Shown here: positions 23,615 to 57,018 of the stretch, in pieces
Layout: every line of letters starts with the position of its first letter
How positions within the stretch are numbered: position 1 is the first letter of the stretch
NCBI RefSeq assembly: GCF_000006765.1
Contig: NC_002516.2
DNA length: 64,000 nt
Direction: 5' to 3' (one strand)
Source: Pseudomonas aeruginosa PAO1
Lineage (GTDB): Bacteria > Pseudomonadota > Gammaproteobacteria > Pseudomonadales > Pseudomonadaceae
Made by a program: the position numbers and the translations under genes
Notes under the pieces: generated by a model
Database searches by the model: none
What the model was told of the DNA's origin: nothing
What the model saw: the letters and a program-made list of their open reading frames with translations, nothing else

Positions 23615-23701
23615 GCCCAGGTGGCGGAATTGGTAGACGCACTAGGTTCAGGTCCTAGCGGTGGCAACACCGTGGAAGTTCGAGTCTTCTCCTGGGCACC
23701 A
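23615..23701 (+). tRNA. tRNA-Leu (anticodon CAG), copy 1
   Basis: 87 nt, acceptor GCCCAGG/CCTGGGC-ACCA, anticodon arm CTAGG-TTCAGGT-CCTAG, long variable arm, GTTCGAG T-loop. Confidence 0.98.
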
Positions 23702-23830: not shown

Positions 23831-23917
23831 GCCCAGGTGGCGGAATTGGTAGACGCACTAGGTTCAGGTCCTAGCGGTGGCAACACCGTGGAAGTTCGAG
23901 TCTTCTCCTGGGCACCA
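23831..23917 (+). tRNA. tRNA-Leu (anticodon CAG), copy 2
   Basis: Identical 87-nt sequence to copy 1, encoded CCA. Confidence 0.98.
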
Positions 23918-47492: not shown

Positions 47493-49568
47493 ATGGCCAT
47501 CGAAAAGAAAACCATCCGCCTGCTGATTCTGGAAGACTCGCAGAACGAAGCCGAACGCCTGGTCAGTCTGTTCCGCAATGCCGGCCACGCGACCCGCGTA
47601 CATCGACTGACCTCTCCCGAGGACCTCGCCGAAACCCTCCAGCAAAGCTGGGACCTGCTGATCGCCGCGCCGACCAGCGAGTGTCTCGAGCCCGGCGAGG
47701 CGCTCGCCACCTTGCGCCGCCAGTCGCGCGACATCCCGTTCATCCAGCTGGTGGCCGACAACAGCTCCGACGCCATCACCGACGCCTTGATGCTCGGCGC
47801 CCAGGACGCCCTGCCTCAAGGCGAGGACGAGCGCCTGGTGCTGGTCGCCAACCGCGAGCTGGCCGGCCTCGCCGAACGCCGCGCGCGCCGCGCCGCCGAA
47901 CTCGCCCTGCGCGAGGCGGAAAAACGCTGCCAGTTGCTGCTCGACAGCTCGGTCGACGCCATCACCTACGTCCACGACGGCATGCACATCTACGCCAACC
48001 GCTCCTACATGGCGCTGTTCGGCTACGAGGACGCCGAGGAACTGGAAGGCCTGCCGGTCATCGACCTGATCGCCTCCTGCGACCAGGGCGCCTTCAAGGA
48101 TTTCCTCAAGGGCTACCAGAACGACCAGCGCCAGACCGAACTGGTTTGCACCGGGGTCAAGCTCGACGGCCAGGAATTCAAGGCGCGCATCAGCCTCTCC
48201 GCCGCCACGTACGACGGCGAACCCTGCATCCAGGTGGTGATCCGCGGCGAGGTCGACAACGCCGAGCTGGAAGAAAAGCTCCGCGAAGTCAGCAGCCAGG
48301 ACCCGGTCACCGGTCTCTACAACCGCAGCCACTTCCTCGACCTGATGGATGCCGCCGTGCAGCAGGCGGTGACCGCCCGCAAGCCGTCGACCCTGGCCTA
48401 TATCCATCTCAACGGCTACCCCTCGCTCCAGGCCGACCACGGGCTTTCCGGGATCGACCTGCTGCTCGGCCAGTTGGCCGGACTGATGCGTGAACAGTTC
48501 GGCGAGGAAGCCGACCTGGCGCGTTTCGGCGATTCGATCTTCGCCGCCCTGTTCAAGGGCAAGACTCCCGAGCAGGCGCAAGCGGCGCTGCAACGACTGC
48601 TGAAGAAAGTCGAGAACCACCTTTTCGAGCTGAACGGCCGCAGCGCCCAGGCCACCCTCAGCATCGGCGTCGCCGGTCTCGACGAGAAGACCGCCAAGGC
48701 CCAGGACGTGATGAACCGTGCGCATCGCTGCGCCGATGACGCGGCACGCAAGGGCGGGTCGCAGATCAAGCAGTACAACCCGGCGGAAGAGCTTGCCGCC
48801 GCCGCCCAGCGCGGCGACGTCATCGCGATCCTCCAGCAGGCGCTGGAGACCAACAGCTTCCGCCTGCTGTTCCAGCCAGTCATCAGCCTGCGCGGCGACA
48901 GCCACGAGAACTACGAGGTGCTCCTGCGCCTGCTCAATCCGCAGGGCCAGGAAGTGCCGCCGGCGGAGTTCCTGCATGCCGCCAAGGAAGCCGGGCTGGC
49001 GGAGAAGATCGACCGCTGGGTGATCCTCAATTCGATCAAGCTGCTCGCCGAGCATCGCGCCAAGGGGCACCAGACCAAGCTGTTCGTCCACCTGTCCAGC
49101 GCGAGCCTGCAAGACCCCGGCCTGCTGCCCTGGCTCGGGGTGGCGCTGAAGGCCGCGCGCCTGCCGCCGGAGTCGCTGGTGTTCCAGATCAGCGAAGCCG
49201 ACGCCACCAGCTATCTGAAGCAGGCCAAGCAACTGACCCAGGGCCTGGCCACCCTGCATTGCCAGGCGGCGATCAGCCAGTTCGGCTGCTCGCTGAACCC
49301 GTTCAACGCGCTGAAGCACCTGACCGTGCAGTTCATCAAGATCGATGGCTCCTTCGTCCAGGACCTCAACCAGGTGGAAAACCAGGAGATCCTCAAGGGC
49401 CTGATCGCCGAACTGCACGAACAGCAGAAGCTCAGCATCGTCCCCTTCGTCGAGAGCGCCAGCGTCCTCGCCACCCTGTGGCAAGCCGGCGCCACCTACA
49501 TCCAGGGCTACTACCTGCAGGGGCCGAGCCAGGCGATGGACTACGACTTCTCCTCGGGAGACGAATGA
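47493..49568 (+). CDS. fimX: FimX (REC-PAS-degenerate GGDEF-degenerate EAL)
   Basis: REC N-terminus, PAS, DPVTGLYNR, GDSIF in place of GGDEF, EVL in place of EAL, QGYYL. Confidence 0.95.
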   Translation: MAIEKKTIRLLILEDSQNEAERLVSLFRNAGHATRVHRLTSPEDLAETLQQSWDLLIAAPTSECLEPGEALATLRRQSRDIPFIQLVADNSSDAITDALMLGAQDALPQGEDERLVLVANRELAGLAERRARRAAELALREAEKRCQLLLDSSVDAITYVHDGMHIYANRSYMALFGYEDAEELEGLPVIDLIASCDQGAFKDFLKGYQNDQRQTELVCTGVKLDGQEFKARISLSAATYDGEPCIQVVIRGEVDNAELEEKLREVSSQDPVTGLYNRSHFLDLMDAAVQQAVTARKPSTLAYIHLNGYPSLQADHGLSGIDLLLGQLAGLMREQFGEEADLARFGDSIFAALFKGKTPEQAQAALQRLLKKVENHLFELNGRSAQATLSIGVAGLDEKTAKAQDVMNRAHRCADDAARKGGSQIKQYNPAEELAAAAQRGDVIAILQQALETNSFRLLFQPVISLRGDSHENYEVLLRLLNPQGQEVPPAEFLHAAKEAGLAEKIDRWVILNSIKLLAEHRAKGHQTKLFVHLSSASLQDPGLLPWLGVALKAARLPPESLVFQISEADATSYLKQAKQLTQGLATLHCQAAISQFGCSLNPFNALKHLTVQFIKIDGSFVQDLNQVENQEILKGLIAELHEQQKLSIVPFVESASVLATLWQAGATYIQGYYLQGPSQAMDYDFSSGDE

Positions 49569-49654: not shown

Positions 49655-50869
49655 TCAGGCTCGTCCTTCGCGGTCGCGGTAGCCGAGCAGGTAGAGGATG
49701 CCGTCCAGGCCCAGGGTCGAGATCGCCTGCTTGGCCGACTGCTTGACCAGCGGCTTGGCGCGGAACGCCACGCCCAGGCCGGCCAGGCCGAGCATCGGCA
49801 GGTCGTTGGCGCCGTCGCCGACGGCGATGGTCTGCTCCAGGCTCAGGCCTTCCTTCGCCGCCAGTTCGCGCAGCAGGTCGGCCTTGCGCTGGGCATCGAC
49901 GATCGGCTCGACCGCCACCCCGGTGACCTTGCCGTCGACGATCTGCAACTCGTTGGCGAACACGTAGTCGATCCCCAGCTTCGCCTGCAATTGACGGGCG
50001 AAATAGGTGAAGCCGCCGGACAGGATGGCGGTCTTGTAACCCAGGCGCTTGAGTTCGGCGAACAGGGTTTCCGCACCCTCGGTCAGACGCAGCGAGGCGC
50101 CGATCTCCTCCAGCACGTCTTCCGACAGCCCCTGCAGCAGCGCCAGGCGCTCCTTGAAGCTGGCGCGGAAGTCCAGTTCACCGCGCATCGCCCGCTCGGT
50201 GATCGCGGCGACCTTCTCGCCGACGCCGGCGGCTTTGGCCAGTTCGTCGATGACTTCCGCCTCGATCAGCGTCGAATCCATGTCGAACACCGCCAGCCGG
50301 CGGTTGCGGCGGAACACGCTGTCCTGCTGGAAAGCGATGTCGACGTTCAATTCCTGGGCGACGCTGAGGAATTCCGCACGCAGCGCCGCCGGATCGGCCG
50401 GTTCGCCGCGTACCGAGAACTCGATGCAGCCCTTGCCCTGGTCGGCGGGCATGTCCAGCGGCATACGCCCGGAGAGACGGTCGATGTGGTCGATGTTCAG
50501 CGCGTACTTGGCGGTGATCGAGCTGACCCTCTGCAGTTGCTCGGCAGTCACCCGGCGGGTGAGCAGGGTCACGATGTGCCGCGCCTTGCCCTGGCCGTCG
50601 ACCCATTGCCGGTAGTCCTCTTCCGAGACCGGGGTGAAGCGCACCTGCTGGTCCAGCTTGTAGGCGGTGAACAGCACGTCCTTGAGGACCGAGGAACCGG
50701 CCTCGGTATCCGGGATTTCCACCAGGATGCCGAACGACAGGGTGTCGTGGATCACCGCCTGGCCGATGTCGAGGATGTTCACCCCGCCCTGGGCCAGTAC
50801 GCCGGTGATGGCAGCGGTGAGACCGGGGCGGTCTTCCCCGGTGATGTTGATCAGGACAATTTCGCGCAA
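49655..50869 (-). CDS. serB: Phosphoserine phosphatase with N-terminal ACT domains (TTG 50869 preferred; longest ORF starts at 50944)
   Basis: GEDRPGL ACT motif, FDMDSTLI HAD motif I, SGGF, GDGANDL. GGAG SD and TAGAAT (50899-50904) precede the TTG. Confidence 0.93.
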   Translation of the reverse strand: MREIVLINITGEDRPGLTAAITGVLAQGGVNILDIGQAVIHDTLSFGILVEIPDTEAGSSVLKDVLFTAYKLDQQVRFTPVSEEDYRQWVDGQGKARHIVTLLTRRVTAEQLQRVSSITAKYALNIDHIDRLSGRMPLDMPADQGKGCIEFSVRGEPADPAALRAEFLSVAQELNVDIAFQQDSVFRRNRRLAVFDMDSTLIEAEVIDELAKAAGVGEKVAAITERAMRGELDFRASFKERLALLQGLSEDVLEEIGASLRLTEGAETLFAELKRLGYKTAILSGGFTYFARQLQAKLGIDYVFANELQIVDGKVTGVAVEPIVDAQRKADLLRELAAKEGLSLEQTIAVGDGANDLPMLGLAGLGVAFRAKPLVKQSAKQAISTLGLDGILYLLGYRDREGRA

Positions 50870-51026
50870 GGCGTAAGCTCCGCCAGGTAAAAGACGCCAT
50901 TCTACCCGCTTTCCCGCACACCCGAGAGACGCAGAGCCGGGCATTTGCCATCACCACCGGTCGGAACCGACCGGGAAAACCCGCGAAACCGCCGCGCGGC
51001 GGCCTGGAAAGCGCGTCAACGGCCCT

Positions 51027-51054
51027 TTGCCCCTCGGGGGGCGCTGGTTATACT
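51027..51054 (+). promoter_or_regulatory. Sigma70-type promoter for the YtjB-family gene
   Basis: TTGCCC-16 nt-TATACT, 35 nt upstream of GTG 51090. Confidence 0.5.
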
Positions 51055-51089: not shown

Positions 51090-52628
51090 GTGACCCGGCC
51101 CACGTCCGTCAAGCCCGACAATTTCTTCCTCCTGCTGTTTCGTGCCTTGCGCCAGCGCCGCGTCCCGATCGCCCTGCGGCTCGCCAGCCATAGCCTGATC
51201 CTGGTGGCCCTGGCCCTGCTGATCTACGCCTGGGTCATGGGCATGCAGTTTCGCCAGGCCATGCAACAGCAGGCCGATGCCCTGGGCCAGAGCCTGATCA
51301 CCCAGACCGCCGCGTCCGCCACCGAGTTGCTGGTGTCCAACGACATCCTCAGCCTCAACGTGCTGCTGAACAACCTGGTGAAGAACCCGCTGGTGGCCCA
51401 TGCGGCGATCTACAGCGTCGACCAGCGCATCCTCGCCGAGGCCGGCAGCCGTCCGAAGCAGAGCCTGCTCGGCGCCACCGAAGGCCTGTACTCGACGCCG
51501 ATCACCTTCCAGGAAGTGATCGCCGGGCACCTGCGCATCAGCCTGGACATGCAGCAGTTCCAGCAGCCGATGATGATCAGCCTGCAGAGCATGGGCCTGA
51601 TCAGCCTGATCCTGCTGATCCTCGCCCTGTATTTCAGCCTGCGCCTGGGGCGGCAGATTTCCACACCCTTGTTGCAATTGCGTGTCTGGTTGCGCGATCC
51701 GGACAATCCGGCCCCCGGCGCCGAACTGCAGAACGAGCTGGGCGACCTGGCGCGCGACCTGGAAGAGCGCCTGGTGCCGGAGAAGCCGCCGGCGCCGGAG
51801 CCGGAAGAAGCACCGCTGCCGCAGAACTTCGACGACATCCTGCTGGAAGACGACGAAGCCGACCTGCGCAGCCGCAAGGTCGAGGCCTCGGCCTTCGAGG
51901 AAGACGACATTCCGCTGGGCGACGCCCTGCTGGACGAGACCAAGCCGGTGGAATTCACCTCCATCGACGAAGACCCGCTGGACCAGGACGCCTTCGACGA
52001 GAACGGAGCCGAAGCCGGGGAACAGCCCGCAGCGCCCGCCGCTGCGCGCGAACCGCAACACAGTGCGGTGCTGGCGATCCAGCTCGGCGCCCAGGAACAG
52101 TTGCGCCGGTTGCCGCGCAGCCGCCTGGTGGATCTCCTGCAACGCTATCGCGACTGCCTGGAACAGGCCGCCCGCCAGTACAAGGGCAGCCTGCACACGC
52201 TCAGCGACGGCGGCAGCCTGATTCTCTTCCACAGCCGCGACAACCGCGCCGACTACCTGACCAACGCGCTCTGCTGCGGTGAACTGATGCGTGCGCTCGG
52301 CCATGCCCTGCAGATCGAGGTCGCCGACAGCGGCATCACCTTGCAACTGCAACTGGGCCTGAGCCTCGGCGAAGACCTCAGCGAACAGACCCAGGCCGAC
52401 CTGCTGCTCAACGAAACCGTGCAGAACGCCCTCGCCCTCAACCAGCACAGCCGCAACCTGCTGCTGGTCGAACGCAGCATCGCCGACGACGCGGTGGTCC
52501 GCGAGCGCGCCCGTATCCGCGCCATCGCCAGTCCGGAAGGAGCCTGCTGCGTCGAGCGTCTGCTGGAGCCGTATCCGTCGATGCTCGAGCGCCAACTGGC
52601 GCGCATGCACGACCGCGCCCGCCCGTGA
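51090..52628 (+). CDS. AhpA/YtjB-family inner membrane protein with HAMP, acidic linker and cyclase-like C-terminal domain
   Basis: Two TM segments flanking a periplasmic region, ISTPLLQL...NELGDLAR HAMP, D/E-rich linker. Divergent from serB, like E. coli ytjB(smp). Confidence 0.7.
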   Translation: MTRPTSVKPDNFFLLLFRALRQRRVPIALRLASHSLILVALALLIYAWVMGMQFRQAMQQQADALGQSLITQTAASATELLVSNDILSLNVLLNNLVKNPLVAHAAIYSVDQRILAEAGSRPKQSLLGATEGLYSTPITFQEVIAGHLRISLDMQQFQQPMMISLQSMGLISLILLILALYFSLRLGRQISTPLLQLRVWLRDPDNPAPGAELQNELGDLARDLEERLVPEKPPAPEPEEAPLPQNFDDILLEDDEADLRSRKVEASAFEEDDIPLGDALLDETKPVEFTSIDEDPLDQDAFDENGAEAGEQPAAPAAAREPQHSAVLAIQLGAQEQLRRLPRSRLVDLLQRYRDCLEQAARQYKGSLHTLSDGGSLILFHSRDNRADYLTNALCCGELMRALGHALQIEVADSGITLQLQLGLSLGEDLSEQTQADLLLNETVQNALALNQHSRNLLLVERSIADDAVVRERARIRAIASPEGACCVERLLEPYPSMLERQLARMHDRARP

Positions 52629-53161
52629 CCACCCTGATCACCCACCCGCTGCCGGTCCTGGCGGTGGGACTGGCCCTTGGCAGCCGGGTGATCCCGCCAC
52701 ACCTGCTGCTGGCAGGCATGCTCGCCGCCTGCCTGCCGGACTTCGACGTAGTCGCCTTCAAGCTCGGCATCGCCTATCACGATGCCTTCGGCCATCGCGG
52801 CTTCAGCCATTCGCTATTGTTCGCCTCGATCCTCGGCGCGCTCGCCGCCCTCGCCTGCCGGCCGCTGCATAGCGGACCGCTGAAAGCCGGGCTGTGGGTG
52901 GCGCTGGCCACCGCCTCGCACAGCCTGCTGGACGCGATGACCAATGGCGGGCTGGGCGTCGCCTGGTTCTGGCCCTGGAGCGACGCCCGCTACTTCATGC
53001 CGTTCCATCCGATCGCCGTGTCGCCGATCGGTCTGTCGCGCTTCCTCAGCGAACGCGGATTGCTGGTGCTGCAATCGGAGGCGCGCTGGGTCTGGCTGCC
53101 CTGCCTGCTGCTGGCGCTCGCCGGCATGGCCCTGCGCTTCCTGTTGCGCCGCTCACGCTGA
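52625..53161 (+). CDS. Inner-membrane metal-dependent hydrolase (YdjM-like)
   Basis: ITH, LPDFD, HRGFSHSL, SHSLLD motifs plus TM segments. GTGA overlap with the upstream gene. Confidence 0.8.
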   Translation: MTTLITHPLPVLAVGLALGSRVIPPHLLLAGMLAACLPDFDVVAFKLGIAYHDAFGHRGFSHSLLFASILGALAALACRPLHSGPLKAGLWVALATASHSLLDAMTNGGLGVAWFWPWSDARYFMPFHPIAVSPIGLSRFLSERGLLVLQSEARWVWLPCLLLALAGMALRFLLRRSR

Positions 53162-53170
53162 CGCCGAAAC

Positions 53171-53198
53171 GAAAAAGCCCCGCTTCGGCGGGGCTTTC
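53171..53198. terminator. Bidirectional intrinsic terminator
   Basis: AAAGCCCCGC-TTCG-GCGGGGCTTT with a UUCG tetraloop between convergent genes. Confidence 0.9.
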
Positions 53199-53218
53199 TC
53201 CTAGTCGGCTATCGACAA

Positions 53219-53929
53219 TCAGAACCGATAGACCTCGGCGTCGGTGCGAATCGGCACCACCAGTGGCATTTTCGGACCTTCCTCTTCCTTGACCTTCGGC
53301 TTGGCCACCGGCTTGCGCGCGGTCGCCGGCGGCGGCGCCTCGGCCGCCACGGCGATCGGCTTGACGTCCTTGGCCAACTGCGCCGCCAGGCGCTTGAGCA
53401 GGTCGCTCTGGGCACGGATCTGGTCGCCGATGCTGCCCTGATGCTGTTCTTCCTCGTGGAACACCCGGCTGTCCTTCAGGTCGCCCTTCTGGTCCAACAG
53501 GCGCCAGCGCGCCTCGATCACTGCCGGCTGCTTGGGGCCGGAGTCGAGGCGACTGATGGTCAGCATCACCTGGACCTGGGGGGTGAAACCGGGTTTTTCC
53601 GGGAACAGCGCCAGGCGGCTGCTGCCCAGCTCGCTGGACATCTGCCGCAGCAGTTGCTGGCTGACATTGGTCTCCAGGTTGCCGGCCCAGCGCGCGTCGG
53701 TGGACAGGCTGAGAATACCGTCGGCCTGCCGCTGCACCATCACATCGCGCTTGAGATAGTCGGCCAGTTGTACCGGGCCGAGCAGGACGGCCGCACCGCC
53801 ATCCTTTTTCGGTACTGCGGCGGCACCGACGTCCAACTGGTAGAGCTGGGCCGGCGGATGGACCGCACAACCCGTCAGCCCGAGCAGGCTGACGAGGGAA
53901 AGACATGCGAAGACGCGCCACGCGCTCAT
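53219..53929 (-). CDS. PqiC-like ABC-type transport auxiliary lipoprotein
   Basis: Lipobox LTGC, YQL, GPVQLADYL.R, RWAGNL, IEARWRL. ATG 53929 preferred over 53962. Confidence 0.75.
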   Translation of the reverse strand: MSAWRVFACLSLVSLLGLTGCAVHPPAQLYQLDVGAAAVPKKDGGAAVLLGPVQLADYLKRDVMVQRQADGILSLSTDARWAGNLETNVSQQLLRQMSSELGSSRLALFPEKPGFTPQVQVMLTISRLDSGPKQPAVIEARWRLLDQKGDLKDSRVFHEEEQHQGSIGDQIRAQSDLLKRLAAQLAKDVKPIAVAAEAPPPATARKPVAKPKVKEEEGPKMPLVVPIRTDAEVYRF

Positions 53930-54068
53930 CGAGAACCACCGTATTTCGCCGAAGATCGGCACTACTGATGCAAGACTTGAATTCTACTGGCCACCCGCCA
54001 TCGGAAACGGCGGCCGAAGGGGCGTATCATCCCCTAACCAGCGCCATAGCTCCAGAGGCAGAGCGTAT

Positions 54069-54221: not shown

Positions 54222-56486
54222 TCAATCCTGTGGCGGAATATCCACCAGCAGGCTGTCGACGCGCTGGAAACCGCGCGGCAGCTTGTTGCCTCGCCGGCCT
54301 CGCTCCCCCTTGTAGTGTTCCAGGTCGTCGCCCTTGAGCGACAGGGTACGCTTTCCGGCCTGCAGGACCAACGTCGCCCCGGCTGGCAGAACAGCCAGGT
54401 CGGTGAGGTATTCCTCGCGGCTGGCCACGCGTTCGCCGGGGATGCCGATGATCTTGTTGCCCTTGCCCTTGCCGAGCTGCGGCAGGTCGGAGACCTTGAA
54501 CAATAGCAGACGGCCCTCGGTCGTCACGGCCGCCAGCCAATCCTGCTCCACATCGCGCACCGGGCGCGGCGCCACCACGGCGGAGCCGTTGGGCAGGCTG
54601 AGCAGGGCCTTGCCGGCCTTGTTCTTGGCCTGCAGGTCCTCGCCCTTGACCACGAAACCATAGCCGGCGTCGGAAGCGATCACGAACAGCGCATCGTCGT
54701 CCGGCAGCAGCACGCATTCGAAGCTGGCCCCCGGCGGCGGCGTCAGCCGGCCGCTGAGTGGCTCGCCCTGGCCTCGCGCGGACGGCAGGCTGTGGGCCGG
54801 CAGCGAGTAGCTGCGCCCGGTGGAGTCGATGAACACCGCATACTGGTTCGAGCGTCCCGGCGCGGCGGCCTTGAAGCCGTCGCCGGCCTTGTAGGAGAGG
54901 CCGGCGGCGTCGATGTCGTGGCCCTTGGCGCAACGCACCCAGCCTTTTTCCGAGAGCACCACGGTCACCGGTTCGGTGGGCATCAGCTCGGTTTCCGACA
55001 GCGCGCGGGCCTCGGCGCGGGCGACGATCGGCGAACGGCGGTCGTCGCCGTAGGTCTCGGCGTCCTTGATCAGCTCCTCGCGCACCAGCTTCTTCAGCTT
55101 GGCCTCGCTGCCGAGCAGGGTCTGCAGGCGCTTCTGCTCCTTCAGCAACTCTTCCTGCTCGCCGCGGATCTTCATCTCTTCCAGGCGTGCCAACTGGCGC
55201 AGGCGGGTGTCGAGGATGTAGTCGGCCTGCACCTCGCTGAGTTCGAAGCGCTCCATCAGCACCGCCTTGGGCTGGTCCTCGGTGCGGATGATGTGGATCA
55301 CCTCGTCGAGGTTGAGGAAGGCGATCAGCAAGCCATCCAGCAGATGCAGGCGGCGCTCGACCTTGTCCAGGCGGAACTGCAGGCGTCGACGCACGGTGCC
55401 GATGCGGAACTGCAGCCACTCCGAGAGCAACTGGCGCAGGTCCTTGACCTGCGGCTTGCCGTCGAGGCCGATGATGTTCAGGTTGACCCGGTAGCTGGTC
55501 TCCAGGTCGGTGGTGGCGAACAGATGGGTCATCAGCTCTTCGACATCGACCCGGTTCGAACGCGGGATGATGACGATGCGGGTCGGGTTCTCGTGGTCCG
55601 ACTCGTCGCGCAGGTCGGCCACCATCGGCAGCTTCTTGGCCTGCATCTGCCCGGCGATCTGTTCCAGCACCTTGGAACCGGACACCTGGTGCGGCAGGGC
55701 GTGGATGACGATATCGCCGTCCTCGACGCGGTACACCGCGCGCATGCGCACCGAACCGCGGCCGGTCTCGTAGACCTTCTGCAGGTCGGCGCGCGGGGTG
55801 ATGATCTCGGCTTCGGTGGGGAAGTCCGGGCCCGGCACGTGTTCGCACAATTCGGCGACCGTCGCGCCCGGCTGGTCGAGCAGGCGCACGCAGGCCGACG
55901 CGACTTCCCGCAGGTTGTGCGGCGGCACGTCGGTGGCCATGCCCACCGCGATGCCGGTGGTGCCGTTGAGCAGCAGGTTGGGCAGGCGGGCCGGCAGCAC
56001 GGCCGGCTCGTCGAGGGTGCCGTCGAAGTTCGGTACCCAGTCCACGGTACCCTGGCCCAGTTCGCTGAGCAGCACCTCGGAATAGCGCGACAGGCGCGCC
56101 TCGGTATAACGCATGGCGGCGAAGGACTTGGGATCGTCCGGAGCCCCCCAGTTGCCCTGGCCGTCCACCAGCGGATAGCGATAGGAGAACGGCTGCGCCA
56201 TCAGCACCATGGCCTCGTAGCAGGCCGAGTCGCCGTGCGGGTGGAACTTGCCGAGCACGTCGCCGACGGTGCGCGCCGACTTCTTGTGCTTGGAATCGGC
56301 ATCCAGCCCCAGTTCGCTCATGGCGTAGACGATGCGTCGCTGCACCGGTTTCAGGCCGTCGCCGATATGCGGCAGGGCGCGGTCCATGATCACGTACATG
56401 GAATAGTTCAGATAGGCCTGCTCGGTGAACTCGGCCAACGACCGGCGTTCGACCCCTTCCAGGCTCAGATCGAGGGATTCGCTCAT
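54222..56486 (-). CDS. parC: DNA topoisomerase IV subunit A
   Basis: [25 protein letters not shown] (catalytic Tyr). Confidence 0.99.
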
Positions 56487-56493
56487 GCGTACC

Positions 56494-57018
56494 TCACGGA
56501 GAAGTGTTTTGGCGCAGCACCAGGGTGCCGTCGCGCTGGGTGAATTCGAGTTGTTTCAGGGCGCTCATGCCGAGTAGCACCTCATCGCCGTCCATGCCCG
56601 GCGCAATCAGCGCCGCGACCCCGGACAGGCGGATATCGCCGAGTTGCAGCTGGTCCAGCCGCGTGCGCCAGCCCGTGGCGCGGCCGTTGGCCGTGCTCAG
56701 GGTGATCGGCGCGCCGCGCTCCAGCGCGAGTCTTGCCGCCAGGGCTTCCGGCACCGCCACCTGGGTCGCCCCGGTATCGAGCAGGAAGGTCACGCCCTGG
56801 CCGTTGATCTGCCCGTTCAGCAGGTAATGGCCCTGCCGGCTGCTGGCCAGGCGCAACTCGACGTAGCCGTCGCCATGGATCGATTGCGGCGCCTGGTTCG
56901 GGTTGCGCTGTCGATCTTCCCAGACGCCGAAATAGCGCGTCGCCAGCGCCAGCCCGGCGATCCAGGCCAGCACCAGCATGATCCGTCCCAGCCGCTGACC
57001 GGGCGCCCGTTGCGTCAC
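56494..57018 (-). CDS. Membrane-anchored retropepsin-like (clan AA) aspartic protease
   Basis: N-terminal TM helix, [23 protein letters not shown]. Confidence 0.85.

Follow-up and report, generated by a model that had tools for sequence, protein, structure and literature searches.

Within a 64,000-nucleotide stretch of Pseudomonas aeruginosa PAO1 (RefSeq assembly GCF_000006765.1, contig NC_002516.2; hereafter the window, in whose numbering all coordinates are given), the plus-strand gene PA4961 (51090..52628) encodes a 512-aa protein of the AhpA/YtjB family that is extended at its C-terminus by a cyclase-like region. The extension is a cyclase-homology-like domain that lacks both the dimerisation arm and the catalytic metal site (residues 323-494; 52056..52571, plus strand), and it is followed by an extra C-terminal helix (residues 495-510; 52572..52619, plus strand) that is the counterpart of helix alpha6 in AdvA, a protein of Acinetobacter baumannii. 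By analogy, PA4961 is most likely a non-enzymatic regulator of the envelope or of cell division, and we regard it as an inner-membrane protein that is probably the Pseudomonas counterpart of AdvA, and in which the dead cyclase domain would act as a tethered regulatory module of the divisome or envelope. The fold, the catalytic degeneracy and the AdvA link have already been described for PA4961 itself. A preprint (Farinha et al., 10.64898/2026.04.03.716176; April 2026, revised October 2026) identifies in residues 324-512 a cyclase-like domain that is non-catalytic and resembles that of AdvA, so that PA4961 is not the undescribed system that a first-pass annotation of the window, made by eye from the sequence, had taken it to be. 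Our additions are modest: a profile similarity to the class III cyclases CyaB and Cya2, the size and spread of the family, its synteny with serB and parC, the non-conservation of a neighbouring YdjM gene, and a conserved signature.

The first-pass annotation had called a class III cyclase-like fold from a series of peptide strings, all of which are present in the translation of ORF 51090-52628, with H324 and S325 encoded at 52059 and 52062. No Pfam or NCBIfam model covers the C-terminal domain. The Guanylate_cyc family (PF00211) matched neither PA4961 at E<=1 nor, at E<=10, a single one of 34 family members; when the 34 domain sequences were scanned against Pfam under relaxed settings, no cyclase or GGDEF family appeared beyond isolated chance-level matches, and a single-sequence search against the Protein Data Bank (PDB) with PA4961 found nothing relevant. 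When a profile of the 34 domains was run against every PDB sequence with a limit of E<=10, exactly three matches came up, every one a class III cyclase: P. aeruginosa CyaB (3R5G, E=1.2e-3), Synechocystis Cya2 (2W01, E=3.2e-3) and a Cya2 chimera (6FHT, E=0.018). The profile alignments to CyaB and Cya2 span beta1 to beta4. The AlphaFold (AF2) model of the domain has high confidence (predicted local distance difference test, pLDDT, 96.5; predicted template modelling score, pTM, 0.92), and a confidently folded domain also appears at residues 324-510 of the full-length AlphaFold model. When the domain model was compared with the PDB in Foldseek, the top 50 structures were all adenylate or guanylate cyclase (AC/GC) enzymes, led by CyaB (E=3.8e-9, template modelling score 0.65, 15% identity). 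The outcome that had been named as contradicting the fold call, a GGDEF-like or unrelated fold, was not seen, and no GGDEF protein is among the 50. The Foldseek result and the model both support the core beta-alpha-alpha-beta-beta-alpha-beta arrangement of the cyclase-homology fold. On the strength of the profile matches and the structural comparison, the C-terminal domain of PA4961 has the class III cyclase-homology fold, as had been read by eye.

The domain is about 190 aa long and conserved, with roughly 80% identity across Pseudomonas species; the closest database protein to a C-terminal query was 100% identical over residues 320-511 and labelled P. aeruginosa. A database search detected the domain in 2144 proteins. 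A scan that used the domain alone as query and covered 1.84 billion representative proteins gave only 73 clusters, whose full-length members are 400-630 aa long and carry the domain at the C-terminus. Among the named carriers beyond Pseudomonas are Halopseudomonas, Kistimonas and Balneatrix. These groups and the Moraxellaceae lie in or near the Pseudomonadales, a distribution in keeping with vertical divergence, for which a long form of YtjB would be the common starting point. Across 34 representatives the family shares the signature C395-C396-G-E-L-x-R401, Q408, S454-R455-N456 and C487-x-E489-R490. The three cysteines of the cytoplasmic domain are individually well kept (C395 in 30/34, C396 in 29/34, C487 in 27/34). 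The terminal helix at residues 495-510, numbered 178-193 in the domain model, is modelled with pLDDT >90, and conservation extends into it and to the residue before it (P494 and L499 in 30/34; Q502 and L503 in 26/34).

The metal-binding residues that would make such a fold catalytic are gone. The first metal-binding Asp of CyaB aligns with Q331, in a column whose residues are Arg, Gln, Glu, His or Lys, with Asp in 0/34 sequences, bearing out the first-pass annotation, which had reported this Asp as lost. The second metal-binding Asp aligns with G374, and its column has Asp in only 2/34. The two-Asp metal site that class III cyclases require is thus missing from the PA4961 family. For the transition-state Asn/Arg pair, which with the substrate-specifying residues belongs to the C-terminal half of the cyclase domain, the manual alignment made in the first pass points to N446, whose column is Asn in 8/34, and to L450, whose column is Arg in 1/34; the profile alignments end at beta4. 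According to the preprint, the canonical residues are absent (Farinha et al., 2026). We judged the arm from the secondary structure of the models, at the position that the same authors give for the arm of AC/GC enzymes. In two independent models only six residues separate the strand at 420-428 from the helix at 435-440, a stretch too short to accommodate the beta-hairpin arm with which the dimeric active site is built. Farinha et al. also find the dimerisation arm of PA4961 to be absent. We infer that the PA4961 domain makes neither cyclic AMP (cAMP) nor cyclic GMP (cGMP).

A domain of this kind has been studied in AdvA (ACX60_00475; structure 7SUA). It was from an AlphaFold database search with the AdvA structure that Farinha et al. 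arrived at PA4961, for which they noted 12% identity, a shared topology and the position of the gene divergent from serB. In the AdvA domain the arm and most catalytic residues are missing, and a further helix is present at the C-terminus. Several assays showed no adenylate or guanylate cyclase activity, no NTPase activity and no change in cAMP or cGMP; the purified domain did not turn over ATP, GTP, CTP or UTP, and the cytoplasmic domain showed no self-interaction. What AdvA does bind is ZipA, by means of a basic tip together with the terminal helix alpha6, and it is required for divisome assembly (Farinha et al., 2026).

The two proteins are alike in several unusual respects. Both have a transmembrane (TM) segment, a periplasmic PAS-like domain, a second TM segment and a variable linker, both are encoded divergently from serB, and both end in a cyclase-like fold that lacks catalytic residues and the arm and carries an extra terminal helix. 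With the full-length PA4961 model, Foldseek aligned 7SUA at E=8.8e-6 (probability 1.00, TMt 0.65, rmsd 5.0, 12% identity), in agreement with the figures in the preprint. They also differ. PA4961, unlike AdvA, has a YtjB domain that Pfam detects, together with a HAMP-like segment; its acidic linker is much longer, and the PA4961 family profile still detects canonical cyclases, whereas AdvA itself has no such similarity.

Several points weigh against equating PA4961 with AdvA. In the Foldseek ranking 7SUA stands 46th, below many canonical cyclases, and it was never matched by phmmer or by the family profiles at E<=10; nor was 7SUA matched by P0185 and P0186, the two members of the family that diverge most, when these were tried as a sequence bridge to AdvA. 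Because 7SUA ranks so low and is unseen by sequence, it is not the score but the unusual features common to both proteins, their architecture and their synteny that carry the link to AdvA. FtsEX is present in P. aeruginosa and missing from taxa that have close orthologues of AdvA (Farinha et al., 2026), and the role in Pseudomonas may therefore differ from that of AdvA. ZipA binding and a mid-cell role in Pseudomonas would follow by analogy with AdvA. D373, in the beta2-beta3 hairpin and one position away from the residue aligned with the second metal-binding Asp, persists in 25/34 sequences, and the conserved Cys/Arg/Asn signature may point to a site that binds a ligand.

These last residues bear on another reading, in which the cyclase-like fold is a small-molecule sensor (of a nucleotide-related ligand, a metal or redox state) or a cryptic enzyme that modulates the membrane part. 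It would account for the family-specific conservation of polar residues and cysteines (C395, C396, E398, R401, Q408, S454, R455, N456, C487 and E489) and for the retention of D373, and Farinha et al. leave ligand binding possible. Against it, the AdvA domain turns over no nucleoside triphosphate and the first metal-binding Asp is absent in 34/34 PA4961-family sequences, and we consider this reading unlikely, if worth keeping in mind. A related and equally tentative idea would join the two readings. The PA4961 family may be a sequence-detectable intermediate between ordinary sensor-HAMP-cyclases and AdvA. In FtsEX-containing Pseudomonadales, the Cys/Arg/Asn-rich site of the PA4961 family would read a cytoplasmic ligand or redox state, so that control of the divisome or envelope is tied to a signal from the periplasm, unlike the FtsEX-substituting role of AdvA.

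The membrane half of PA4961 resembles a sensor. PA4961 aligns with 25 orthologues from residue 1 onward, and hydropathy reveals two membrane segments, at about residues 25-55 and 159-188. A basic cytoplasmic N-terminus (net +5) leads into TM1 (together residues 1-50; 51090..51239, plus strand), which in the model belongs to a continuous helix at 27-82. The periplasmic YtjB/SMP_2 domain follows (residues 51-160; 51240..51569, plus strand), with two helices and four strands in the model and a PAS/PDC-like character, and TM2 (residues 161-186; 51570..51647, plus strand) lies in a model helix at 154-202. Pfam SMP_2 (YtjB, PF10144) matches residues 28-158 (E=1.5e-8; 34.9 bits against a cut-off of 28.9), which together with the two hydropathy segments upholds the TM-periplasm-TM arrangement with a YtjB domain that had been proposed in the first pass, and it also matches 26 of 35 family representatives. 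By BLASTP, Escherichia coli YtjB is 24% identical to the N-terminal part of PA4961 (E=1e-5). Residues 53-166 have been listed as PAS (PMC8694187). The family profile of the periplasmic domain matches the periplasmic detector domain of the histidine kinase GacS (PDB 5O7J, E=6.3e-4), and NCBIfam gives weak matches of the YtjB module to the N-termini of LetS and DgcN/YfiN; from these similarities, the YtjB module looks like a common type of sensor.

E. coli YtjB (Smp)/AhpA and PA4961 thus share a homologous N-terminal TM-periplasmic module, and both genes are divergent from serB. The E. coli protein, in contrast, is only 214 aa long and ends soon after its second hydrophobic segment, with no HAMP-like part, linker or cyclase-like domain. 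This is as the first-pass annotation had stated it: short, beside serB and without the extension.

After TM2 comes a probable HAMP-like helix-connector-helix (residues 187-228; 51648..51773, plus strand), for which the evidence is weak. Pfam HAMP (PF00672) does not match PA4961 itself and matches 4 of 35 relatives (best E=1.1e-4), and the family profile reaches the Af1503 HAMP chains in the PDB only below threshold (E=0.06-0.16). In the full-length model the helix that contains TM2 runs to residue 202 and is followed by a 13-residue connector and a helix at 216-228, a geometry that fits HAMP, and P193, W200, E216, G218 and L220 in this segment are invariant across Pseudomonas. A HAMP in PA4961 is plausible, if weakly supported. 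The acidic linker of about 90 aa that had been described along with it is present. It covers residues 229-322 (94 aa; 51774..52055, plus strand), has 30 Asp/Glu against 6 Lys/Arg for a net charge of -24, and is disordered, with pLDDT <50 across residues 243-313 of the full-length model. Variable in length and sequence, it is the sole poorly conserved part of the protein among 26 Pseudomonas orthologues, where its alignment columns are gappy and unconserved.

Membrane sensors joined by HAMP to a class III cyclase, of which the mycobacterial HAMP-cyclases are the type, have the same order of sensor, TM segment, HAMP and cyclase fold as PA4961. Where these enzymes would have a rigid coupling helix, PA4961 has the disordered 94-aa tether, and rigid signalling from HAMP to the cyclase-like domain, as in true HAMP-cyclases, therefore seems unlikely from the model. 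Class III cyclases in general, CyaB (3R5G) among them, share the core fold with PA4961 at a template modelling score of about 0.65 and a weak but specific profile similarity over beta1-beta4, and differ from it in that PA4961 has no PF00211 match, has the first Asp replaced family-wide, has no modelled arm and carries the extra C-terminal helix.

Both the tether and the missing arm bear on the function put forward in the first-pass annotation, which was that PA4961 is a pseudo-cyclase and tunes cAMP/Vfr by binding nucleotide or by forming heterodimers with CyaB. Class III cyclases function as dimers, and heterodimers of inactive and active partners exist. CyaB is moreover the single best match to PA4961 by sequence and by structure, and fimX, a FimX-type GGDEF-EAL gene (47493-49568, plus strand), lies two genes upstream. 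The similarity to CyaB is nevertheless remote at 15% identity, the residues conserved in the PA4961 family are different from the interface and active-site residues of cyclases, the arm is unmodelled in PA4961 (the preprint agrees), and the disordered tether after HAMP leaves no rigid signal path to the domain. The AdvA domain, for its part, shows no self-interaction, no cyclase activity and no effect on cAMP or cGMP, and AdvA binds ZipA. Taken together, this evidence makes a role in tuning CyaB quite improbable.

Many database records name the PA4961 family a sensor histidine kinase. Apart from the names themselves, the TM-PAS-TM-HAMP module does resemble those of GacS (5O7J), LetS, YfiN and WalK. 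Against this, Pfam finds no HisKA or HATPase_c match in PA4961 at E<=1, and Foldseek places the C-terminal domain among the cyclase-homology folds. With no kinase domain and a cyclase-like fold in its place, the kinase identity is refuted, and we give it virtually no weight.

We therefore return to PA4961 as a probable counterpart of AdvA, for which the following mechanism may be proposed. The dimeric N-terminal part would sit in the membrane and sense conditions in the envelope, as the AdvA analogy and the mutant phenotypes suggest. The cyclase-like domain, a class III fold without catalysis, would act as a tethered protein-binding or regulatory module, and its family-specific conserved surface and terminal helix may contact cytoplasmic components of the divisome or envelope, with ZipA the first candidate by analogy. 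Loss of PA4961 would then give rise to the reported phenotypes in fitness, in aminoglycoside and fluoroquinolone susceptibility, and in filamentation. Screens cited in the preprint tie PA4961 to fitness, antibiotic susceptibility and filamentation (Farinha et al., 2026). One of the cited sources itself reports the fitness defect and the antibiotic susceptibility; the ciprofloxacin susceptibility and the filamentation of PA4961 mutants are given here second-hand, as the preprint reports them.

In the genomic setting of PA4961, the divergent serB and the convergent parC are the conserved neighbours. We kept 80 related loci, all from the Pseudomonas group and found with a full-length alignment. 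The gene for the ACT-ACT-HAD phosphoserine phosphatase SerB (in the window at 49655..50944, minus strand) is the divergent upstream neighbour in 80/80, while on the downstream side a PqiC-like gene is present in 69/80 and parC was detected in 63/80. Two very distant members, one metagenomic and one from Balneatrix, have the order GGDEF/EAL gene, serB, target and parC(-parE). The fimX-serB-target-parC block is much older than the genus. A FimX-type GGDEF-EAL gene stands upstream of serB in 43/80 related loci, and in one very distant member a FimW-like gene precedes it.

Immediately downstream of PA4961 in the window lies a gene for an inner-membrane protein of the YdjM family, PA4962-type (52625..53161, plus strand). 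The assignment is firm: its product matches Pfam YdjM (PF04307) at E=1.4e-33, with 116.3 bits against a cut-off of 29 over residues 1-168 of 178, and the word 'hydrolase' attached to it is a database label. The two genes overlap by the four bases GTGA (52625-52628), which hold the stop of PA4961 and the GTG start of the YdjM gene, as the first-pass annotation had seen. From this overlap it had proposed a two-protein unit, and one may accordingly ask whether PA4961 is a receptor that controls the membrane hydrolase of a translationally coupled gene. Where the YdjM gene is present it is always adjacent, on the same strand and immediately downstream, with the 4-base overlap in 5/14 loci, a gap of about 23-52 bp in 7/14 and 2 loci unclassified, and a few assemblies call both genes as one fused ORF. 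The pairing is not kept, however. YdjM is found 3' of the target in 14/80 related loci only and is absent from 66/80 and from both distant members, where the next gene after the target is the PqiC-like one or parC, and AdvA has no YdjM-like partner in the gene map of the preprint (Farinha et al., 2026). A functional unit of the two proteins is thus improbable; YdjM is a lineage-specific accessory gene and no part of a conserved two-protein system. The fused ORFs, which are 630-690 aa long, come from a few P. aeruginosa assemblies (P0006, P0007, P0008 and P0105); in P0006 the YdjM part starts with residue 511 and shares 98% identity with YdjM of the window. The fusion may stem from a true change of frame or from an error of assembly.

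The PA4961-YdjM pair in the window has a promoter-like site before it and a hairpin terminator after it. The former is a sigma-70-like match, TTGCCC-16-TATACT (51027..51054, plus strand), in the divergent intergenic region between serB and PA4961 and 36 bp 5' of the GTG start of the latter; the promoter scan, which relies on consensus match alone, gave this 1 match against 0.1 expected in shuffled sequence. The latter is a GC-rich hairpin between an A-run and a T-run (53172..53199, assigned to neither strand), seen in the sequence and reported in part by the scanner, which is likely a bidirectional terminator common to the YdjM side and to the convergent lipoprotein gene beyond it. With a promoter 5' of the target and a terminator 3' of YdjM, the two genes are therefore probably co-transcribed here. 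In E. coli, ydjM is under SOS control. A scan with a LexA-box-like pattern, which could have pointed to such control for YdjM here, found no site near 52625, and matches overall were fewer than expected by chance.

Other features of the region were also noted. The convergent PqiC-like lipoprotein gene (53219-53962, minus strand) is an orphan of the PqiC/ABC_trans_aux type, wedged between the target operon and parC (54222-56486, minus strand), and it is absent in the distant members. Just upstream of parC, a 174-aa ORF (56494-57018, minus strand) codes for a product with a hydrophobic segment at the N-terminus and the motif D-T-G-A, which by eye looks like a membrane-anchored aspartic protease of the retropepsin type. 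An Rfam scan of the PA4961 locus gave no match, and a repeat scan of the locus returned codon-bias echoes only. Farther away in the window are two plus-strand tRNA genes (23615-23698 and 23831-23914), 216 bp apart, each 84 nt long and each scoring 52 bits in Rfam; the length suggests tRNAs with a long variable arm.

The histidine kinase annotation that is widespread for this family is wrong, and the error has been propagated across Pseudomonas genomes. It concerns a protein that is linked to fitness, to aminoglycoside and fluoroquinolone susceptibility and to cell length in P. aeruginosa, and whose family may show how the fold of a signalling enzyme has been re-used as a non-catalytic regulator of division or of the envelope.

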